Positions 2,830 through 45,861 of a stretch of 64,000 nucleotides of DNA are shown here, piece by piece. This stretch comes from Trichosphaerium sp. ATCC 40318. Lineage: Eukaryota; Protista; Tubulinea. How positions within the stretch are numbered: the stretch's first letter is position 1; every line of letters starts with the position of its first letter. The notes under the pieces were generated by a model. It was not told where the DNA came from. It was given only the letters and a program-made list of their open reading frames with translations, and did no database searches. The stretch lies in contig JALMLS010000124.1 of the NCBI GenBank assembly GCA_038496445.1, forward strand, positions 62,001 to 126,000, read 5' to 3'. The translations under genes were made by a program, and so were the position numbers.

Positions 2830-5800
2830 TTAACGATGTAGTTAATAACAGTCATTGAATGAGAGTACTAACAGGCTTTGAGCATTACAACTTATTGCGC
2901 CTAACGAACGATATTTTTGCATTGTATTCAGAACCAACATCTCGGATATGAGGCTGTTTGGTAGGGTATTTTTTCGAGCACAATATCTCCATGCGCTGAA
3001 TAGTCGCCAGTCTTAGAAATTGGTCTAAAACTTGTCTAAACCTGCTCTCCACACCCAGGCGACTATGTTAACTGGTCCATAGCGCTCCTATTTTCGTACA
3101 CAATCTTAAACAAATTTGAGCAGCATCCGCAGCGTTTTTTTCGTGTTCACAGAAACCATATTTTATTTTCGGACAATGTTACACGTCCAACACACTTTCC
3201 ATATTGGGTACCCATGTACAAAGGGCTCCAACGAGTATGTAAATATACAATTACACTTAAAACAATACATAAATACACCCATCTTCGGCATCATCTTAAT
3301 TAGCGTGTCAAAATTGCTTTTTTAGCAGCCATAAAAATAGTGCCTTCAAAAGCCTTGGAGCTTCTTTGGATGCAGTAGGCGTCTTTGGTGTAGTTTATTT
3401 ATTTGAAGCCAAGTATCAGTTGTAGATGCATCTGTACAAGGTACCTCAGCAGTTGATGAAGCACTTGAAGGTACTATTGTAGTTGCCTCCGTAAATAAAG
3501 TTAGTTCTAGAAAGTAAAGTAGGAAGTACCATTTATTGAGCCTTTGTAGTTGGAGATTTAGTAGGAGCTTCAGTTGTAGGAGCATCTGTAATTGGTGCTA
3601 CTGTGGTTGGCACATCTGTTGTTGGAGCTTCGGTTGCTGGTTCTAATACTGTTAAGTTGAAAAAGATGATAGTAATGTCCAATTAATCACTCAAGTACCA
3701 TTGTAGTTGAGGCTTCCGTTGTAAGAGCTACTATAGTTGGTGCTCACTTGTAGGAGCTTCAGTTGTAGGAACCTCTGTGGTTGGAGCCTCTGTTGTTGGT
3801 GCTTGTAGGCGATTCTGTAGTTGGTGCATCTACAAAGAAAGTTAGTTGCTTTAGAAAGTAAAATATAAAGTACCACTTGTTGGTGCTACAGTTGTAGGTG
3901 CTTCAGTAGTTGGAGCTTCAGTCGTAGGCGCATCTGTTGTAGGTGGTTCAGTTGTTGGAGCCTCAGTAGTTGGCGATTCGGTGGTTGGAGCATCTGTAGT
4001 TGGTGCTACGGTTGTTGGTGCTTCAGTAGTATGTGCATCTGTGGTTGGAGCTTCAGTTGTTGGCACTTCAGTTGTTGGTGCTACAGTTGTAGGAGCCTCT
4101 GTAGTTGGAGCGTCAGTTGTAGGAGCTACAGTTGTAGGGGGTTGCAGTGGTAGGAGCTTCAGTTGTTGGTGCTGCTGTTGTAGGAGTAGCTGTAGTTGGT
4201 GACTCTGTTGTTGGTGCATCAGTTGTAGGCGATTCTGTAGTAGGGGCTTCTGTAGTTGCTTCGGTTGTTGGCGCAACAGTTGTTGGGGCTTCTGTTGTTG
4301 GAGCTGCTGTAGTAGGTGCTACAGTTGTTGGTGCTTCAGTTGTTGGTGCCTCAGTGGTTGGCGCTTCTGTAGTTGGAGTCTCCGTTGTTGGAGCGTTTGT
4401 AGTTGGAGCTTCAGTGGTTGGCGCTTCAGTTGTTGGAGCTTCAGTTGTTGGTGCTTCAGTTGGCTTCTGTAGTTGGTGCCTCCGTTGTTGGTGGTTGTGT
4501 CGTAGGCGCTTCAGTTGTAGGAGCATCTACAAAGAAAGTTAGTTGCTTTAGAATAAAATACAAAGTACCACTTGTTGGTGCTACAGTTGTAGGTGCTTCT
4601 GTAGTTGGAGCCTCAGTCGTTGGTGCTTCTGTTGTTGGAGCTTCAGTTGTTGGGGCTTCAGTTGTTGATGCATCTGTAGTAGGCGCTACAGTGCTTGGAG
4701 CCTCAGTTGTTGGTGCCTCAGTTGTAGGTGCATCTGTGGTTGAGCTTCAGTCGTACGACTCATGGGAACCTCCGTAGTAGGCGCCAATGTAGTAGGTGCT
4801 ACAGTTGTAGGAGCTTCAGTGGTAGGCGCTACAGTTGTAGGTGCTTCAGTTGTTGGTGCCTCTGTCGTTGGCGCCAATGCTGTTGGAACCTCTGTAGTTG
4901 GTGCTTCTGTTGTTGGAGCTTCGGTTGTAGGTGCATCCGTGGTAGGAGCAGCAGTAGTTGGAGCTTCAGTCTTTGGGGCTTCAGTTGTTGGCGCCTCAGT
5001 TGTAGGAGCCTCTGTGGTAGGAGCTTCGGTTGTAGGCTCCTGTAGTTGGAGCCTCCGTAGTAGGGGCTTCAGTAGTAGGCGCTACAGTTGTAGGAGCTTC
5101 AGTGGTAGGTGCATCAGTAGTTGGTGCTTCTGTAGTTGGAGCGTCAGTAGTAGGTGCTACAGTTGTAGGAGCCTCAGTTGTTGGAGCCTCAGTAGTAGGC
5201 ACTGCAGTTGTAGGAGCCTCCGTTGTTGGCGCATCAGTGGTAGGGGTTGCAGTTGTTGGTGCATCTATTACTGTTAGATGGAAAAAGACAACAATATATA
5301 TAAATCAAGTACCAGTTGTTGGTGCCTCAGTAGTTGGAGTTTCAGTTGTAGGTGCTTCTGTAGTTGGTGGAGGCGTCATTGGTGGCATTGTAGTTGGATT
5401 TGGCACTTCTGTTGTTGGCGCAGCAGTTGTAGGAACCTCTGTGGTTGGAGCCTCCGTTGTTGGCGCTACAGTTGTAGGTGCTTCTGTAGTTGGAGCATCA
5501 GTAGTTGGAGCCTCAGTTGTTGGTGTCTCTGTGGTAGGCGCCACTGTAGTTGGCGCTTCTGTAGTTGGTGGAGATGTCATTGGTTGCATTGTAGTTGGAT
5601 GCTGTGTTGTTGGTGCCGCGGTAGTTGGAGGTTCCGTAGTAGGTGCCTCTGTAGTAGGAGCCTCAGTTGTTGGTGCTTCTGTCGTTGGCGCTTCAGTTGT
5701 TGGAGCCTCAGTAGTTGGTGCTTCTGTTGTTGGCACATCTGTTGTTGGTGCTTCAGTTGTTGGAGCTCTGTTGTAGGTGCAGCAGTTGTAGGTGCATCTG

Positions 5801-6900
5801 TAGTTGGTGCTACTGTAGTTGGTGCATCTATCACTGTTAGGAGAAAGGTAAAAATTATATCGATCGAGTACCAGTTGTAGGAGCCTCAGTTGTTGGTGCT
5901 TCTGTTGTTGGCGCATCTGTAGTAGGCGCATATGTAGTTGGTGCTTCTGTTGTTGGCACTTCAGTTGTTGGTGCTTCAGTAGAGCTTCAGTGGTAGGAGC
6001 CTCTGTCGTTGGAGCTTCGGTTGTAGGCGCATCCGTGGTAGGAGCTTCAGTCGTTGGTGCCTCTGTGGTAGCAGTTGTAAGTGCATATGTAGTTGGAGCC
6101 TCTGTTGTTGGTGCTTCTGTAGTAGGCGCTACAGTTGTAGGAGCCTCAGTTGTTGGGGCTTCGGTGGTTGGTGCATCTGTAGTAGGTGTTACTGTGGTTG
6201 GTGCAGCTTTTGTTGGCCCCTTGGTTGTTGGAGTGCCAGTAGTTGGCGCTTTCGCTGTAGCCTCTGCTGTCAGTGCATCAGTGGTTGGAGCATCTATAGT
6301 TTATTGTCTCAGTCGTTGGTGCGTCTGTAGTAGGTGCCACAGTGGTAGGAGCATCAGTTATAGGGGCCTTTGTGTTGGTGCTTTTGTTGTTGGAGCTTCA
6401 GTCGTAGGTACATTGGTTATTGGAGCTGGGTTTTGGTGATAGGAGCATCTGTAGTTGAAGCTGTTGTTAGCGGTTCTATTGTTGGAGTACTTGCAGTAGG
6501 AGCATCAGTTGTTGGTGTGGCTGTGGTAGGGGCTGCAGTTGTAGGTGTAGTTGGCGCATCTATCACAGTTAGAAAGAAAGCTAAAAAATATCAAGCAAGT
6601 ACCAGTTAGGTGCATCTGTTGTGTGCAGCAATAGTTGGAGCATCCGTTGTTGGTGCAACAGTTGGCTGTGAAGCAGTGGTTGATGAGCTTGTAGAAGGTG
6701 TTTCTGTGACAGAAGTTAAGACAACGTATCATCAACAGTAATCCTTCTGTCTTGAACCTTCTTTTGTTGGCCTTTGTACTTGGTGCCTCAGTTTTAACAG
6801 TGTACGTTGTACAACAAGCCTTGGAAGTTTAGTTGGCCCTTTTATAGTTGTAGTTATAGGTGTTTCAGATATTGGAAATTTGTTTGCCAATGAGCGGTGT
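2830..6900 (-). pseudogene. Multi-exon mucin-like (APTTE/APTTV/APTTD)n surface protein, frameshifted
   Basis: Long 15-bp tandem repeat arrays split by short GT-AG introns; many frame switches; degenerate hydrophobic tail near 2830-2890; ends approximate. Confidence 0.7.
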
Positions 6901-22311: not shown

Positions 22312-22603
22312 ATAGTAAATAAATTGTTTTTGAAAACAAGAGTTCATTAAACTGCGATCAAAAGAATAGGTAACAAGAAACATGCACGTGTTGTACTGTA
22401 GGAAATATTGTGGTGAAGGGCTTGAACGTCAACATCCTAAACATACCAAGTAGTATGGAGCAAACATTCTCAAAGCAAATTGCGAGCACAAGTATTGTAG
22501 TACATAATGTCTTGCTAAGTCAACACTTAATCGAATTTCAATTGTTGTGGTAATGGCTAAAGCGTATGCTTTTGCACGCTACACAGCTTTTCGTTTTACT
22601 GAA

Positions 22604-23884
22604 ATGATACCAACAGAGCTCATTATTGACGTTTTTGAGTATACTCGAAATAAAACGCGATATTCGATTGCTCAGACGTGCTGGCTATTCTACGACATTA
22701 TTCATAGACACGTTGGTTACGGTGAAATCGTTATCAGGTCTTCAGAGTCCATTAAGCGTTTAAGCGATCAGAAATTGCTTTTAAACAATACATTTGTATC
22801 AATTCGGGAGTACAGCGCCACAGACGAGGAAATATGTTCTTTGGCTGGTGTTAAGAAATTATCAATGATGGGTTTTAAATTGAGTGATAAGTGCCTTGAG
22901 GTACTTGCCGGTGTTAAAGAAATACATGTGCACAGGTGTCCTAATATCACAGATGAAGGTATTCAATTCTTGTCAGGTGTACATACGATAGATGTAAGCT
23001 TGATGAGGCAGTTGACAGATAAGTCATTGGAAGCTATTTCAGGTGCTTACAAAGTAAATATTTCGCAATGTAGTAGGATAACTGATGAAGGATTAAAATC
23101 ACTTGCTGGTGTTCATTGGATAAGTATGAGATATTGCAAAGTCACAGACAATGGATTAAAATCACTTGCTGGAGCTCACACAATAATAATGTCGAGTTGT
23201 GATTATATTGATGGATCTTGTTTTGCGCACTTGGTTAAAGCTAAAAACACAAACGGCGAAATGTGTCTTCATGTCATTGATATTTCTGATTGTGAGGGTG
23301 TTATTCTTGATCACGTGAAACAATTGTCTGGTGTACACGAAATCAGTTTACATGGTTTGATGGTTAAAGATGAAGATATCATACCTCTTGCTGGTGTACA
23401 CAAACTTGGCTTGAATGAGTGTACAAAACTAACTGCAGCATCAATGTCATCTTTTTCTGGTATTCACACCATTTATTTGGAATGCATAGAATTAAACGAC
23501 TTGTGGCTAGAACCTTTATCAGGGGTTCATACAATATACCTGAGCTATTGTAGAGGTATAACCGTTAATGGATTGAAATCACTTGCAGGAGTGCATACTA
23601 TTCACTTGAATGCTTCTAGTGATATCACAGATGAAGGTGTCATTCATCTTGCTGGTGTACATGAGATAATGTTGGATTTCTGTAGCAAGATAACAGATAG
23701 AGGTGTTAAAGCTCTTGCAGGTGTTCATACAATAAGTCTAAAAGCTTGTCCTCTTGTAACAGATGAAGGGATATCATCTCTTCAAGGAGTTTCTAGAATA
23801 ATTGCATTCAACACTAAGTGTACACAAGCTATTGTACACGTGATGCATTTTGTGCAGAATGTAGTTCAACGAGATGGTTTGTGA
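22604..23884 (+). CDS. Intronless F-box + cysteine-containing LRR protein
   Basis: MIPTELIIDVFEY..IAQTCWLFYDII F-box; ~21-22-aa repeats of the form ITDEGLKSLAGVHTIxLxxC. Confidence 0.88.
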   Translation: MIPTELIIDVFEYTRNKTRYSIAQTCWLFYDIIHRHVGYGEIVIRSSESIKRLSDQKLLLNNTFVSIREYSATDEEICSLAGVKKLSMMGFKLSDKCLEVLAGVKEIHVHRCPNITDEGIQFLSGVHTIDVSLMRQLTDKSLEAISGAYKVNISQCSRITDEGLKSLAGVHWISMRYCKVTDNGLKSLAGAHTIIMSSCDYIDGSCFAHLVKAKNTNGEMCLHVIDISDCEGVILDHVKQLSGVHEISLHGLMVKDEDIIPLAGVHKLGLNECTKLTAASMSSFSGIHTIYLECIELNDLWLEPLSGVHTIYLSYCRGITVNGLKSLAGVHTIHLNASSDITDEGVIHLAGVHEIMLDFCSKITDRGVKALAGVHTISLKACPLVTDEGISSLQGVSRIIAFNTKCTQAIVHVMHFVQNVVQRDGL

Positions 23885-41722: not shown

Positions 41723-43016
41723 CATAGGTTTTTTGGTTTCGTTAATTTGTTTGTGTAGATTATATATACAACCTATTTTCCTGATGCTTTTTGAGAAGCT
41801 TAGTCAGTCAGGTACGTCGTTGTCGCTTGAGTTTTTTTTTGTTTTTTTTTGTGTACTGAGACAGGGAAAAATTGTTGCACTGTTTATTCGGCATGAGTGT
41901 CTACGAATTGAGCGACGGTTGTTTTTAATGACTAGTTCCTTTGTTAACCATGTAGAGTTTCACATTTTAAAATCTGTTCATTTCGTACCAAGCAAGAGTT
42001 CGATAAATGACATACCGATCTTGTGGAGGAAAAAAGTATCAAATCTTATTTAAGAACTATTGAACCTAAATGACGCTCTTACACTTTTGCTATGTTTACT
42101 TTAGACAAGGCAGCTAATACACGATTACTTTGTTTACTATTGAGAACCCTGAGTTCTATATTTGACCATACAAAATTGCGCTAGTGTTTTTTACATAATT
42201 TTTTCCCATTTTGAAACACCAAATGATGAACAGATTACACCCATTTCATATCGGTTGCGCGAAACTCGTAAGATACGAGGCTTGAGGTTGCCTGTACATC
42301 AAGCAAAAGGCACCGTTACTGTTTGTATGTACATTTATTCAGTGCTTCACCAAACATGTGAATTCTCTTTGTTCATCCTGCAAATACCAGTAGCATCTAT
42401 CCAACCTCTACGAACATAACTTCTTTGATATGGTATTAAACAGAAGTTCTCCGACATTGCTAAGGTAACCTAAATAAAGAAGTATAGGAGCAAACTTGTT
42501 TCAAAACTTCTATTTTCAAATTCTAAAGAATTTGTTTTTTGTTGTTGCCTTTAAAACCTTTCTCCGATAATGTTTGTTAACTGCAGTCATGAACAGTATC
42601 TGAATGGAGAATTGATAATAACAAATCTTATTGTTGCGTTCTTCTACAACACCGTTGCGTGCATAGACTACCTATCAAATCAAAGCCAGAAAGCGCGAAA
42701 AGAGGTCATTTACCCAACTCGTTTAAAAAAAACACCGAAAAAAAATTGTGCGAGTATCACTTTAAACATCATTTTTATCGCTTAAAAACAATTATACCGT
42801 ACATTGATTGCGTCACATCCTTTTCTTGTGGAAAAACTTTCGAAAAGTCCGAAAATACAAAAAACTTGGTACTTCACTTTCATCGCTTTTCCGAACGTAT
42901 AAAGTTCCGCCACGCATTTCATAGGCTCTTCAGAACCCGTATGAGGTAATACTCAAAAAGGAACGTAGCCGCTGAAATTAGACAAAAAACTCCAAACACA
43001 ACACTCAACGCAACGC

Positions 43017-45158
43017 ATGCGCACCTCACAATCACTAGCGGCCTTATTAGTCGTATGTGTGCTATATGCAACACTCTCACAAGCAAAAACTGTAGGAGAT
43101 GGTGAGTTATAAGCTTATTTATACGTAGACCGAAAACTAACTTGATATTTCTAGTATACAAAAGACCTGCTTGTTCACCACACGAAGTCCAGAAACTTTC
43201 TCTCCAAATCATTACCCAAATGAATTGTATGCGTCCTGGTACCCTAAAATCATTCGAGGGTGTAGGACGTCTTCATTGGGACCCTAAGAAGCTTAATCCG
43301 TAAGTATTTGAGACTATCCTTTGCTTGCACACAAAAGAATTGCAAAAAATCCAAAAAAAAACCTAAAAGCGATACAAGATCCCAAGTGCTGATTTTTCTC
43401 TCTCCCTTTGTAGATACCTCCAATATAAGGCTACAGATCAACTTATAAATATCGTTGTCAACAGTATAATGGACCCTGACAAGGAGGCTTTGGATATTGA
43501 TATCATGAGCGCTATTAGAACTATTCCTGAGCAGTTCTTGATATATAAGTGGATAAATGATGATTCAAGCGCCGCATCTTGTCTTAGAAGGCACTACCCA
43601 CCAAGTACGTCAAAAAGTCGACTTTTTTTTTCGTTTTCCGTTTTCGTTTTTTTGTTTTCGAGTGAACTGTGCAACAAAGTTGCAGTTGCAACCTCTTTGT
43701 TTGGAGCGATTTGGTTTTTTTTCTTACGAATTTTGCGTTTAGGCACAATAAACCGCGGGGATGGCCTTGATATTGATATTGTTCAAACCAGTAACGCGTT
43801 TAGACGCAGAATGTACAGTTTTGGCTTTAATTCGGTCGCTGTCAATCGATTTACCGGAAGAGTATCAAAACTCTCTGAGAAACATCACTATCGCTTCCGC
43901 GGTGGCGAGGACATTGGCGATCTTGATGTTCGCGCATTCCAAACGTACGTTTCCGCCTTTTTTTATCCCAACGACTCGCACTTAACCACATATAACTGAC
44001 TTAAAAATAGGCTATGGAACATGAACAACCCAAAGTCTAAGCACATCCCAGAAAAGTCTATGGGTAAATTTGATGGCATAACACAAGCGAGGATGCTTAA
44101 CTCCCCAGCTGATGGGTTCAAAAAGGGTTGGCAATGCGCTAACCAGAAGATAGAAAGCGAAGAAGAATTTTTCGAAAAGTTCCTTGGTGAGACAGCACCA
44201 CCAACAACAAAACCTCCAAAACCAAACCAATGGCAAGAAAAACCAACAAAGAAGCCTTTCTTCCCAACATTGTGGCCTAAAAAAACAACACCAAAGCCAC
44301 CTACACCAAAGCCTACATCTGCACCAACAGCAGCTCCATCAAGACCAGTTGTTGTACCTACATCAAAGATGACTCTTGGAAGACTTGGACTTCGTCTTAT
44401 CAAAACTTTTGAAGGGTTCAGAGCAAACTTTTACTACGACTCTGCTGGTATTAGAACTATTGGTTATGGTCACGCATGTCATGTACATGACTGTAACAAT
44501 ATCAAAGGACTAAGAGAGGATGGTTCTGTACGTTGAAACCACTTTCAATCTTTTTTTTTTTTGTTTGTTCGAGCTTGGTTTGCTGACTCTTTATTTTGCA
44601 GGTTTATCAAGCCCACCCTCCTTTGTCCGGCGCTGAAGGACAAGATGTATTCCGCCATGATCTTAAGTACAGCAAATATGTTAAGGCTGTTCAACAAAAT
44701 GTTAAAGTGCAGCTAAAGCAATACCAGTTTGACGCTTTGGTTTCTTTTACGTTCAACCTCGGTCCAAATATCTTTGCAGGATCTGATCTTTTGAGGATAA
44801 TAAACAGAGGTGGTAGCGCAGCTGAAGTCACAGCCGAATTGATGCTATTCGTCAATGTCTTCCATGCTAATGGTAGAAAAGAAAGAATACAAGGTCTGGT
44901 AAACAGACGTGCTGCTGAAGCTAACTTATACACAGTACGTTCAAAACTTACTTTATCACTGTATTCTTTATGTTTTTGTTGACGTGTTTGTTTTAGACTG
45001 GTGAATTCGGTCGTGTCAGTCTCAGTTCATGTGTTGTTGATAACGCTCATGGGCGGAAAAACGCACCAGGTCTTTGCGTGGACACAGCTGATTGCGGTGG
45101 TAGATCATACCGTGGTTTCTGCCCTGGAGCAGCTAATATTAGATGTTGCATTGAGTAA
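43017..45158 (+). CDS. Secreted modular lysozyme: degenerate M15-like peptidase + PG-binding-like domain + Pro/Thr linker + GH24 muramidase + Cys-rich C-terminal module
   Basis: Signal MRTSQSLAALLVVCVLYATLSQA; SAIRTIPEQFLIYKW; AFQTLWNMNNP; FEGFRANFYYDSAGIRTIGYGH (E-D-T triad); QFDALVSFTFNLG; GLVNRRAAE; GFCPGAANIRCC; 7 exons in frame. Confidence 0.9.
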
Positions 45159-45392
45159 AAAAAAACAACAACAAAAAAGAGCACGCACGTGCTCACAAAC
45201 TCCAAAAAATATTTAACGGTCAAAAAAACCCCAACCTTTAGTATCAAATTATAAATTATGTATTCTCTTCGTGAACAAAATGGAAAACATCCCATTATAT
45301 CTAATCCCCACTTTATCCAAAATCCTTGTAATTAAATCCAAAAAATAATAAATAATCAAAATGTCAAAACTATCAAAAAAATGTATTTCGTG

Positions 45393-45861
45393 TTATTCTC
45401 TCTCTGTTCCTTCACTTTGAACGTTACATTCCTCTTGTATCTTACTTGGCGCGAAACCAAGCCATGCGCGTGGTCCAGGGGAGGCTAGACCGATATATGA
45501 AGCGTAAGCAGCCAGAATTGCGAAAAGAGTGACGTCAATGCGAAAACACATGTAAGCAGTTGTATCGTATGATTGGGTAAACGCTAAGGACAAAAGAGCG
45601 CATAATCCAACTATAATTGCGCAAACAGGCGCTACAACGAGCGGTAGTAAAGAAAGCGCTATGAATGGGCTATTTGAACCCTTTAAATCAGTTCTAATTC
45701 GTTTAAAGATCAACGAAGGTAACACAAGACCTAAAAGCTGTTATTTGTACTGCTATCGCTGATAGCGAACCAAATAAGCCAAACAGTAACCCTGAGACGG
45801 CCCAAAACAGAACTGAAAGCAATCCACTGCCAAAACTTATGAACAGCGATATCAAGTCCAT
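45393..45861 (-). CDS. Small multi-pass membrane protein of unknown function
   Basis: Two exons give ~140 aa with three to four hydrophobic segments; donor site weak. Confidence 0.5.

Follow-up and report, generated by a model that had tools for sequence, protein, structure and literature searches.

A predicted amoebal protein joining a phage-type GH24 lysozyme to a divergent relative of VanY-type peptidases

VanY/LdcB-type LD-/DD-carboxypeptidases (M15B, PF02557) are recognized by four sequence blocks, SgYRsyeeQ, SEHqtGlAiD, yGF, and EPWHyRYVG. Replacement of a zinc-ligand histidine abolishes the activity of LAS/M15 enzymes, VanX and LdcB among them. An M15-like fold has been kept in eukaryotes for binding and not for cleavage in the N-terminal signaling domain of Hedgehog, which has the LAS/DD-peptidase fold. 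The phage and bacterial GH24 endolysins of the T4-lysozyme family (for example, PDB 8app, 6et6, and 2anv) carry the Phage_lysozyme domain PF00959 with catalytic Glu, Asp, and Thr. Among eukaryotes, the GH24 muramidase of the fungus Trichophaea saccata (PDB 8b2s) bears a cell-wall-binding SH3-like domain of 73 amino acids (PMC10394673). Bivalve GH24 lysozymes are reported to have been acquired by horizontal transfer, and there too a phage-type lysozyme resides in a eukaryotic genome, as it does in the amoeba considered here (PMC5303276).

The locus analyzed in this work lies in a 64,000-nucleotide stretch of contig JALMLS010000124.1 of Trichosphaerium sp. ATCC 40318 (hereafter the window, to which all positions refer). 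The encoded protein has the complete PF00959 domain with Glu, Asp, and Thr in common with the endolysins, and the stretch GYGH-x-C-x4-C in common with the T. saccata enzyme. It would likewise be a secreted eukaryotic GH24 enzyme with an extra non-catalytic module, these properties being predicted on the amoebal side. The accessory part of the fungal protein is the SH3-like domain, whereas those of the amoebal protein are an N-terminal degenerate peptidase domain (domain 1) and a six-cysteine tail. Domain 1 shares the block order and spacing of the VanY/LdcB-type enzymes and differs from them in being eukaryotic, split by introns, and fused to a lysozyme. The Hedgehog domain offers a precedent for it, with no sequence relation and in another biological context.

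Gene structure and protein layout

Seven exons on the forward strand (43,017–43,101, 43,155–43,299, 43,414–43,604, 43,743–43,944, 44,011–44,527, 44,602–44,934, and 44,997–45,158) were joined in frame, and translation of the spliced exons yielded a protein of 544 amino acids. All six introns (53, 114, 138, 66, 74, and 62 nt) have GT..AG boundaries, and the spliced coding sequence of 1,635 nt contains no frame breaks and a single stop codon at its end. These data agree with the original prediction of seven in-frame exons, and all peptide strings quoted in it were found in the translation. The gene is host-like in composition, with GC3 of 0.35 compared to 0.29–0.40 for the neighboring open reading frames, which include MORN-repeat and F-box/LRR-domain ones. 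The original view of the gene as intronized is likewise supported. An exact-product look-up with the open reading frame of exon 5 gave no match. Splicing and expression of the gene are presumed from the genomic sequence.

Intron 3 (43,605–43,742, forward strand, 138 nt, phase 1; boundaries taken from the spliced translation) is free of in-frame stops, and exon 3, intron 3, and exon 4 can be translated without interruption (43,415–43,942). A transcript retaining this intron would therefore gain 46 residues within the peptidase-like domain. Exon 5 is open throughout and encodes the last part of domain 1, the complete linker, and the beginning of the GH24 domain with its catalytic residues; since it spans both sides of the junction, the fusion of domain 1 to GH24 is written in one exon.

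The protein consists of a signal-peptide-like start, the 243-residue domain 1, a linker rich in Pro, Thr, and Lys, the GH24 domain, and a tail of 53 residues with six cysteines. The N-terminus (amino acids 1–23, positions 43,017–43,085 including the start codon), read by eye, has a short polar start, a hydrophobic run, and a final small-residue motif, SQA; the protein presumably enters the secretory pathway. In the linker (amino acids 267–333, positions 44,186–44,386), Pro, Thr, and Lys account for 60% of the computed composition, and 12 basic residues face 2 acidic ones.

The GH24 domain and the six-cysteine tail

The lysozyme domain (amino acids 334–491, positions 44,387–44,934, forward strand) is split by intron 5 (44,528–44,601). 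The end of exon 5 matched positions 1–30 of the PF00959 profile (27.2 bits, E = 5e-6) and exon 6 matched positions 35–125 (76.3 bits, E = 3e-21), both above the gathering cut-off of 22.3 bits. The second match continues the first across intron 5, in support of this splice. The catalytic motif E-x8-D-x5-T is represented by Glu342 (44,411–44,413), Asp351 (44,438–44,440), and Thr357 (44,456–44,458), and this stretch aligns with its counterpart in GH24 chains of solved structure, among them T4 lysozyme and the fungal 8b2s. Comparison with endolysins in PDB gave E values down to 1.3e-14, and identity to phage endolysins was 40%–48%. The GH24 domain, proposed earlier to have intact E-x8-D-x5-T, is thus complete with its catalytic residues in place and is apparently a working muramidase.

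Exon 7 (44,997–45,158, forward strand) encodes the tail (amino acids 492–544) and the stop codon, and a phase-0 intron sits exactly at the boundary between the GH24 domain and the tail. The cysteines follow the spacing C-x14-C-x5-C-x8-C-x7-CC. Searches with the tail in Pfam, NCBIfam, PHROGs, PDB sequences, and the ESM Atlas found no match. A single-sequence AlphaFold model of it is all-beta with pLDDT of 73.7. Foldseek retrieved nothing for this model at E ≤ 0.001, and an exhaustive structure search (VIA) yielded only six chains with Z ≥ 2; five of them were beta-defensins or a defensin-fold anemone toxin, at Z of only 2.0–2.5. An Atlas search by shape gave no further pointer. The beta-defensin-like (trans-defensin) class is defined by a three-stranded sheet and the pattern C-x(4-8)-C-x(3-5)-C-x(9-13)-C-x(4-7)-CC, relative to which the first loop of the tail exceeds the permitted length and its x8 loop falls one residue short of the usual range. 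A beta-defensin-like fold of the tail is thus a weak lead from modeling.

Domain 1 and its relation to VanY-type peptidases

Domain 1 (amino acids 24–266, positions 43,086–44,185, forward strand) is encoded by exons 1–5 and split by introns 1–4. It comprises a divergent VanY-type (M15B) peptidase-like part and about 60 C-terminal residues outside that part. It was compared with known proteins by phmmer, by hhalign, and with a custom reference profile of 85 bacterial VanY proteins. In HMMER, domain 1 scored 6.4 bits against this profile, a value reached by 3 of 5,000 shuffled sequences. The hhalign comparison gave P = 1e-4 over 73 columns, and its score of 36.1 stood about 8.6 standard deviations above the shuffles (mean 13.4, SD 2.6, maximum 23.7). 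The N-terminal half of the profile, which is independent of the motif used for collecting the VanY set, was significant alone (p about 0.0016); the C-terminal half alone was weak, with 285 of 5,000 shuffles reaching the score (p = 0.057). The top non-self phmmer matches were all VanY proteins. In a background of 892 open reading frame segments, the score of domain 1 was reached only by true VanY proteins and by five phage proteins with the PG_binding motif, two of which carry the canonical SxHxxGxAxD. Pairwise comparison with Ply500 was marginal (p = 0.03) and in register, and a word search that started from Ply500 brought up nothing but near-identical proteins of Listeria.

The suggested M15-like nature of domain 1 is thus supported at the profile level. 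With the T5-endolysin-type M15_4 profile there was no signal, the score of −1.1 bits being attained by 28% of shuffles, and pairwise alignment with T5 Lys did not reach significance. Queries with single exons and with the stop-free piece 43,415–43,942 recovered no family of Pfam, NCBIfam, or PHROGs at E ≤ 10, and the domain scored below every curated threshold for M15B/PF02557. A PDB sequence search produced nothing but one chance match to a ribosomal protein. A word-index protein search returned none, its length filter putting full-length relatives of 300–950 amino acids out of reach, and there were zero matches among 1.84 billion representatives for a query that contained the 46 intron-encoded residues, with an E-value bar of about 50 bits. 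Searches by tblastn against phages, metagenome scans for exons 4 and 6, and ESM Atlas feature searches with domain 1 likewise gave nothing. The single-sequence AlphaFold model of 43,415–43,942, which includes the residues encoded by intron 3, had a pLDDT of 42.7, too low for fold reading, and in alignment with the VanY set the intron-encoded insert shifts the SxH strand out of place. Because curated models and searches miss the domain, its kinship rests on hypothesis-driven tests with p of about 1e-3 to 1e-5. We consider with moderate confidence that domain 1 is a very divergent relative of VanY-type (M15B) peptidases.

Four motif blocks follow one another in the VanY order and spacing. The first, SAIRTIPEQ (amino acids 109–117, positions 43,508–43,534), corresponds to SgYRsyeeQ and keeps Arg112 (43,517–43,519) and Gln117. 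INRGDGLDID (amino acids 143–152, positions 43,748–43,777) takes the place of SEHqtGlAiD: Arg145 (43,754–43,756) stands for the first zinc-ligand His, Ile143 for Ser, and Asp150 for Ala, with Gly148 and the zinc ligand Asp152 retained. The columns replaced are 100% invariant across the 85 bacterial VanY proteins, that of Arg145 being 100% His. EKHHYRFRG (amino acids 186–194, positions 43,877–43,903), located by the C-terminal half of the profile, global hhalign, and MAFFT --add, matches EPWHyRYVG and preserves, in invariant columns, the catalytic Glu186 and the zinc ligand His189. Domain 1 therefore shares with VanY/LdcB-type enzymes the Arg, Gln, Asp ligand, catalytic Glu, and second His ligand, that is, two of the three zinc ligands, and differs by the His to Arg, Ser to Ile, and Ala to Asp replacements.

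HMMER, hhalign, and MAFFT --add independently converged on the same register, which is also that of the original prediction, so that its equation of INRGDGLDID with SxHxxGxAxD and the loss of the zinc-ligand His stand. A placement of the SxH motif two residues earlier (S-T-I...), made by eye, was dropped since the three aligners favor the other register. Domain 1 most likely no longer cleaves peptide bonds, and it may reasonably be taken as putatively catalytically dead and as having a putative peptidoglycan-targeting role.

The PG-binding module that had also been proposed for this region was not recovered. Pfam did not detect PG_binding_1 (PF01471) in exon 5, and a custom profile built from 120 viral sequences scored 0.8 bits on domain 1, with six residues aligned and 206 of 5,000 shuffles reaching this value. 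In hhalign, PG_binding_1 had a probability of 8% over 6 columns. The candidate stretch crosses an exon junction.

Proposed function and alternative readings

We propose, with a probability of about 0.6, that the locus is a nuclear gene for a wall-degrading enzyme in which a working GH24 domain is combined with a non-cleaving VanY-type domain serving as a binding or structural module. The protein of this bacterivorous amoeba would pass through the secretory pathway, being exported or directed to the phagosome, and would degrade bacterial cell walls. The GH24 muramidase would be the working part that cuts the glycan strand of peptidoglycan. Domain 1, tied upstream of it by the long Pro/Thr/Lys linker, may have been retained for binding the stem peptide of peptidoglycan or for a structural role, and could hold the lysozyme on its substrate. 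The six-cysteine tail, added via a phase-0 exon, may supply further envelope binding.

A more detailed scenario, which we put forward only tentatively, is that an ancestral bacterial or phage fusion of a VanY-type peptidase with GH24 was duplicated in the amoeba and that the copies then decayed in opposite halves. In the copy described here, the lysozyme would have been kept, the peptidase would have become a non-catalytic binder of the stem peptide, and a beta-defensin-like tail would have been gained by exon addition.

Domain 1 could instead be a still active peptidase and the protein a two-blade lysin; Asp150, Asp152, and His189 would then make up a rebuilt metal site, and Glu186 would act as the base. 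Glu186, His189, Asp152, Arg112, and Gln117 are all retained, and the preservation of so many active-site residues despite strong divergence hints at constraint. Moreover, the new Asp150, two residues ahead of the ligand Asp152, should lie on the same face of the strand as that ligand, and in principle a metal site could be restored in this way. However, Arg145 is bulky and cationic and likely occupies the metal site, SxHxxGxAxD has lost its invariant Ser and Ala as well, and we know of no M15 enzyme with a ligand set of this type. We regard such activity as unlikely.

We give an equally low rating to the possibility that domain 1 is a decaying remnant, capable of neither binding nor catalysis and at most a spacer or folding aid for a useful lysozyme. 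Its extreme divergence, the lack of any library match, and the loss of three invariant positions could be explained in this way, but 243 codons distributed over four exons stay open with correct splice sites, and five functional positions and the family hydrophobic pattern are kept well enough for profile detection. Furthermore, domain 1 has four cysteines, which could form disulfide bonds if the domain is exported.

It is improbable that domain 1 is unrelated to M15 and has some other fold with chance motif matches. Such an origin would account for the failure of both curated models and database searches, the absence of signal with the T5-type profile, and the non-significant C-terminal half of the VanY profile, but it does not fit four motif blocks in the correct order and spacing, an hhalign score of 36 against a shuffle maximum of 24, and a register shared by three aligners. 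A silent or mis-modeled locus, either a pseudogene or two transcripts instead of one, is very improbable, since the stop-free intron 3, where the exon structure depends on splice signals and the family alignment, is outweighed by 1,635 nt without a frame break, six canonical introns, a Pfam match running contiguously over intron 5, and the meeting of both halves inside one exon.

A secreted GH24 lysozyme is by itself expected biology for an amoeba. Bacterivorous amoebae digest their prey with wall-degrading enzymes borrowed from bacteria and phages. Under the reading that we favor, a lysozyme with a non-cleaving VanY-type module, the gene shows the remodeling of a fused enzyme after transfer: one catalytic half retired with its substrate-facing residues kept, introns inserted throughout, and a cysteine module placed at an exon boundary. 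If the tail is indeed defensin-like, the protein would be a natural parallel to engineered lysin-peptide fusions and would show a defensin-type fold outside animals. Should the opposite pattern hold in paralogues, the family would illustrate in compact natural form the subfunctionalization of a two-domain enzyme and would provide natural designs for peptidoglycan-targeted lysozymes.

Gene structure and domain layout

The gene at 43017-45158 on the forward strand was rebuilt by script from the region 42600-45600. The predicted seven-exon structure was confirmed: exons 43017-43101, 43155-43299, 43414-43604, 43743-43944, 44011-44527, 44602-44934 and 44997-45158 join into an open frame of 1635 nt (544 codons) with a single stop at its end, and its translation contains all peptide strings listed in the original prediction. 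The six introns (53, 114, 138, 66, 74 and 62 nt) are all of the GT..AG type, and four of them have a GTACGT donor. Intron 3 (43605-43742, 138 nt, phase 1) lacks in-frame stops, and its retention would add 46 mostly hydrophobic residues inside the peptidase-like domain with the frame intact. A tblastn search with the product revealed no second copy of the gene in the window.

The protein starts with a hydrophobic stretch ending in SQA (residues 1-23), which, judged by eye, resembles a signal peptide. It is followed by a peptidase-like domain with four cysteines (domain 1, residues 24-266), a linker in which proline, threonine and lysine make up 60% of the residues (267-333), a GH24 domain (334-491), and a six-cysteine tail (492-544) encoded by its own exon, with a phase-0 intron exactly at the domain border. 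The junction between domain 1 and GH24 does not coincide with any intron. Exon 5, which is uninterrupted, runs from the last part of domain 1 through the complete linker into GH24, of which it covers the first 47 residues and with them the catalytic ones; since the junction is written within a single exon, the fusion is not an artefact of two joined genes.

The GH24 lysozyme half

Pfam family PF00959 matched with profile positions 1-30 in exon 5 (E 5e-6) and 35-125 in exon 6 (E 3e-21), both above the gathering score, and the two matches are contiguous across intron 5. Exon 6 also matched solved endolysins (best E 1.3e-14), and identity to phage endolysins was 40-48%. The catalytic stretch aligned with solved GH24 chains, including T4 lysozyme rows, the best being the fungal muramidase of Trichophaea saccata (8b2s), and Glu342, Asp351 and Thr357 are spaced as in the GH24 family. 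The PF00959 match and the aligned catalytic stretch thus bear out the claim of an intact E-x8-D-x5-T motif, and this half can be regarded from its sequence as a complete and probably active muramidase. Like 8b2s, the amoeba enzyme carries a C-x4-C stretch straight after GYGH (44470-44495; ACHVHDC versus LCKTKGC in 8b2s), which is missing in 8app and 9kbt, the other two matches compared residue by residue. This stretch may reflect common descent, or else an adaptation for disulfide bonding in secreted eukaryotic GH24 enzymes.

In a 235-aa phage protein encoded on a viral contig (L173, IMGVR_UViG_3300037466_000928), a PG_binding_1 motif occurs together with a GH24 domain sharing 36% identity with that of the amoeba over about 137 residues (E 4e-20); a binding module joined to GH24 is therefore a layout common in phages.

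Domain 1 and its kinship with VanY peptidases

Domain 1 is an orphan at the sequence level. It was not recognised by Pfam, NCBIfam or PHROGs, either exon by exon or on 43415-43942, which could be used as one stop-free query because intron 3 is open in frame. No relatives were found among PDB sequences, by word search or exhaustive search of 1.84 billion representatives, or by tblastn against phages, two metagenome scans or the Atlas; the protein libraries seem to lack the proteins of the Trichosphaerium genome. The single-sequence AlphaFold model of 43415-43942 had a pLDDT of 43, too low for use, and a narrow profile of the T5-endolysin-type M15_4 family gave no signal on domain 1.

Since EKHHYRFRG resembles by eye the EPWHxRYVG block of VanY (M15B) peptidases, 120 bacterial loci with a block of this type were collected, and the 85 proteins that also had SxHxxGxAxD were used to build a VanY HMM. 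Spliced domain 1 scored 6.4 bits, a value reached by 3 of 5000 composition-preserving shuffles, and hhalign aligned it with the VanY profile across 73 columns (P 1e-4; score 36.1, where 160 shuffles averaged 13.4 with an sd of 2.6 and did not exceed 23.7). Taken on its own, the profile's N-terminal half, which excludes the block used for collecting the set, was significant (8/5000 shuffles); the C-terminal half was not (285/5000), with the register as expected. MAFFT --add arrived independently at the same register, and a phmmer search of about 1100 mixed local sequences had only VanY proteins as its top non-self matches. Of the 892 ORF segments used as background, none but genuine VanY proteins and five phage proteins with a PG_binding_1 motif scored as high as domain 1. 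Taken together, these comparisons provide moderate support for kinship with VanY (p roughly 1e-3 to 1e-5, allowing for three or four profiles), which appears coherent across four motif blocks.

These blocks are SAIRTIPEQ (residues 109-117; SgYRsyeeQ in VanY), with Arg112 and Gln117 retained, INRGDGLDID (143-152; SEHqtGlAiD), FGF (167-169; yGF) and EKHHYRFRG (186-194; EPWHyRYVG). The ligands Asp152 and His189 and the catalytic Glu186 are retained, the first zinc-ligand histidine is replaced by Arg145, the invariant serine by Ile143 and the invariant alanine by Asp150. The alignment thus gives the register and conclusion originally proposed, an M15-like domain that appears to have lost a zinc-ligand histidine, with Arg145 in its column. 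Asp150 is expected to lie on the same face as Asp152 and might in principle help to form a restored site. In LAS/M15 enzymes, such as VanX and LdcB, losing a histidine ligand abolishes catalysis, and therefore an inactive peptidase is, by analogy, the likeliest reading of domain 1.

A peptidoglycan-binding module, also proposed within domain 1, was not supported. A PG_binding_1 profile, built from 120 segments of viral contigs picked by the DGxFGxxT..AVxxFQ signature, gave 0.8 bits on residues 186-275, a value that 206 of 5000 shuffles also attained, and the only aligned string, the six-residue VRAFQT, belongs to the selection signature. Moreover, in global hhalign the stretch after EKHHYRFRG overlies the C-terminal helix of the VanY family itself. 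Residues from about 205 to 266 are thereby left without a domain assignment.

The five phage proteins mentioned above, from viral contigs (L207, L194, L133, L196 and L162), scored 8-18 bits on the VanY profile. They look like PG_binding + M15 endolysins, a layout that the original prediction cited for bacteria; two have the canonical SxHxxGxAxD, and the remaining three may also be M15 relatives.

The cysteine tail, genomic context and origin

The tail (44997-45155) had no sequence relatives in Pfam, NCBIfam, PHROGs, PDB sequences or the Atlas. Its single-sequence AlphaFold model, small and all beta, was unexpectedly confident (pLDDT 73.7). Foldseek returned no match at E<=0.001, and exhaustive comparison with 48,161 chains gave Z>=2 for six only. 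Five of these have a defensin fold, namely the beta-defensins of crocodile, duck and human (1 and 2) and an anemone toxin; they cover 33-43 residues at 2.2-3.2 A, at a low Z of 2.0-2.5. The cysteine pattern C-x14-C-x5-C-x8-C-x7-CC resembles that of beta-defensins, except for a longer first loop, and the charge is near neutral (6 basic and 5 acidic residues). A defensin-like fold, suggested by the model, is a lead only.

The GC3 of the gene (0.35) falls within the range of neighbouring ORFs (0.29-0.40), and its introns have 34% GC. Other long ORFs of the window encode MORN repeats (MORN_2 at 574-2406 on the reverse strand, E 5e-38, and at 51926-52762 on the forward strand, E 7e-12) and F-box/LRR domains (22547-23884). 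Considering its GC3, intron composition and these neighbours, the gene is genome-resident and compositionally adapted rather than a contaminant. Elsewhere in the window, at 3877-6171, a 15-nt unit, TTGTTGGAGCTTCAG, is repeated about 154 times in an array (66% matches), where the local GC is 0.50 and GC skew and AT skew are both strong. The array would encode a pentapeptide repeat, either VVGAS when read on the forward strand or a unit rich in Thr and Pro when read on the reverse strand, and is possibly a coding region of mucin-like or low-complexity type.

Both modules are of bacterial or phage type. Transfer of phage-type lysozymes to bivalves has been described (PMC5303276), and in fungi GH24 enzymes are known that carry a wall-binding domain of SH3-like type (PMC10394673). 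A full-text literature search of incomplete coverage found no paper on a eukaryotic M15-GH24 fusion. Overall, the original observation is confirmed and its interpretation partly supported. On sequence grounds, the gene is best described as encoding a divergent fused wall-degrading enzyme of the amoeba, in which the lysozyme half seems functional and the peptidase-like half, of VanY type and lacking one zinc ligand, has probably lost its activity.
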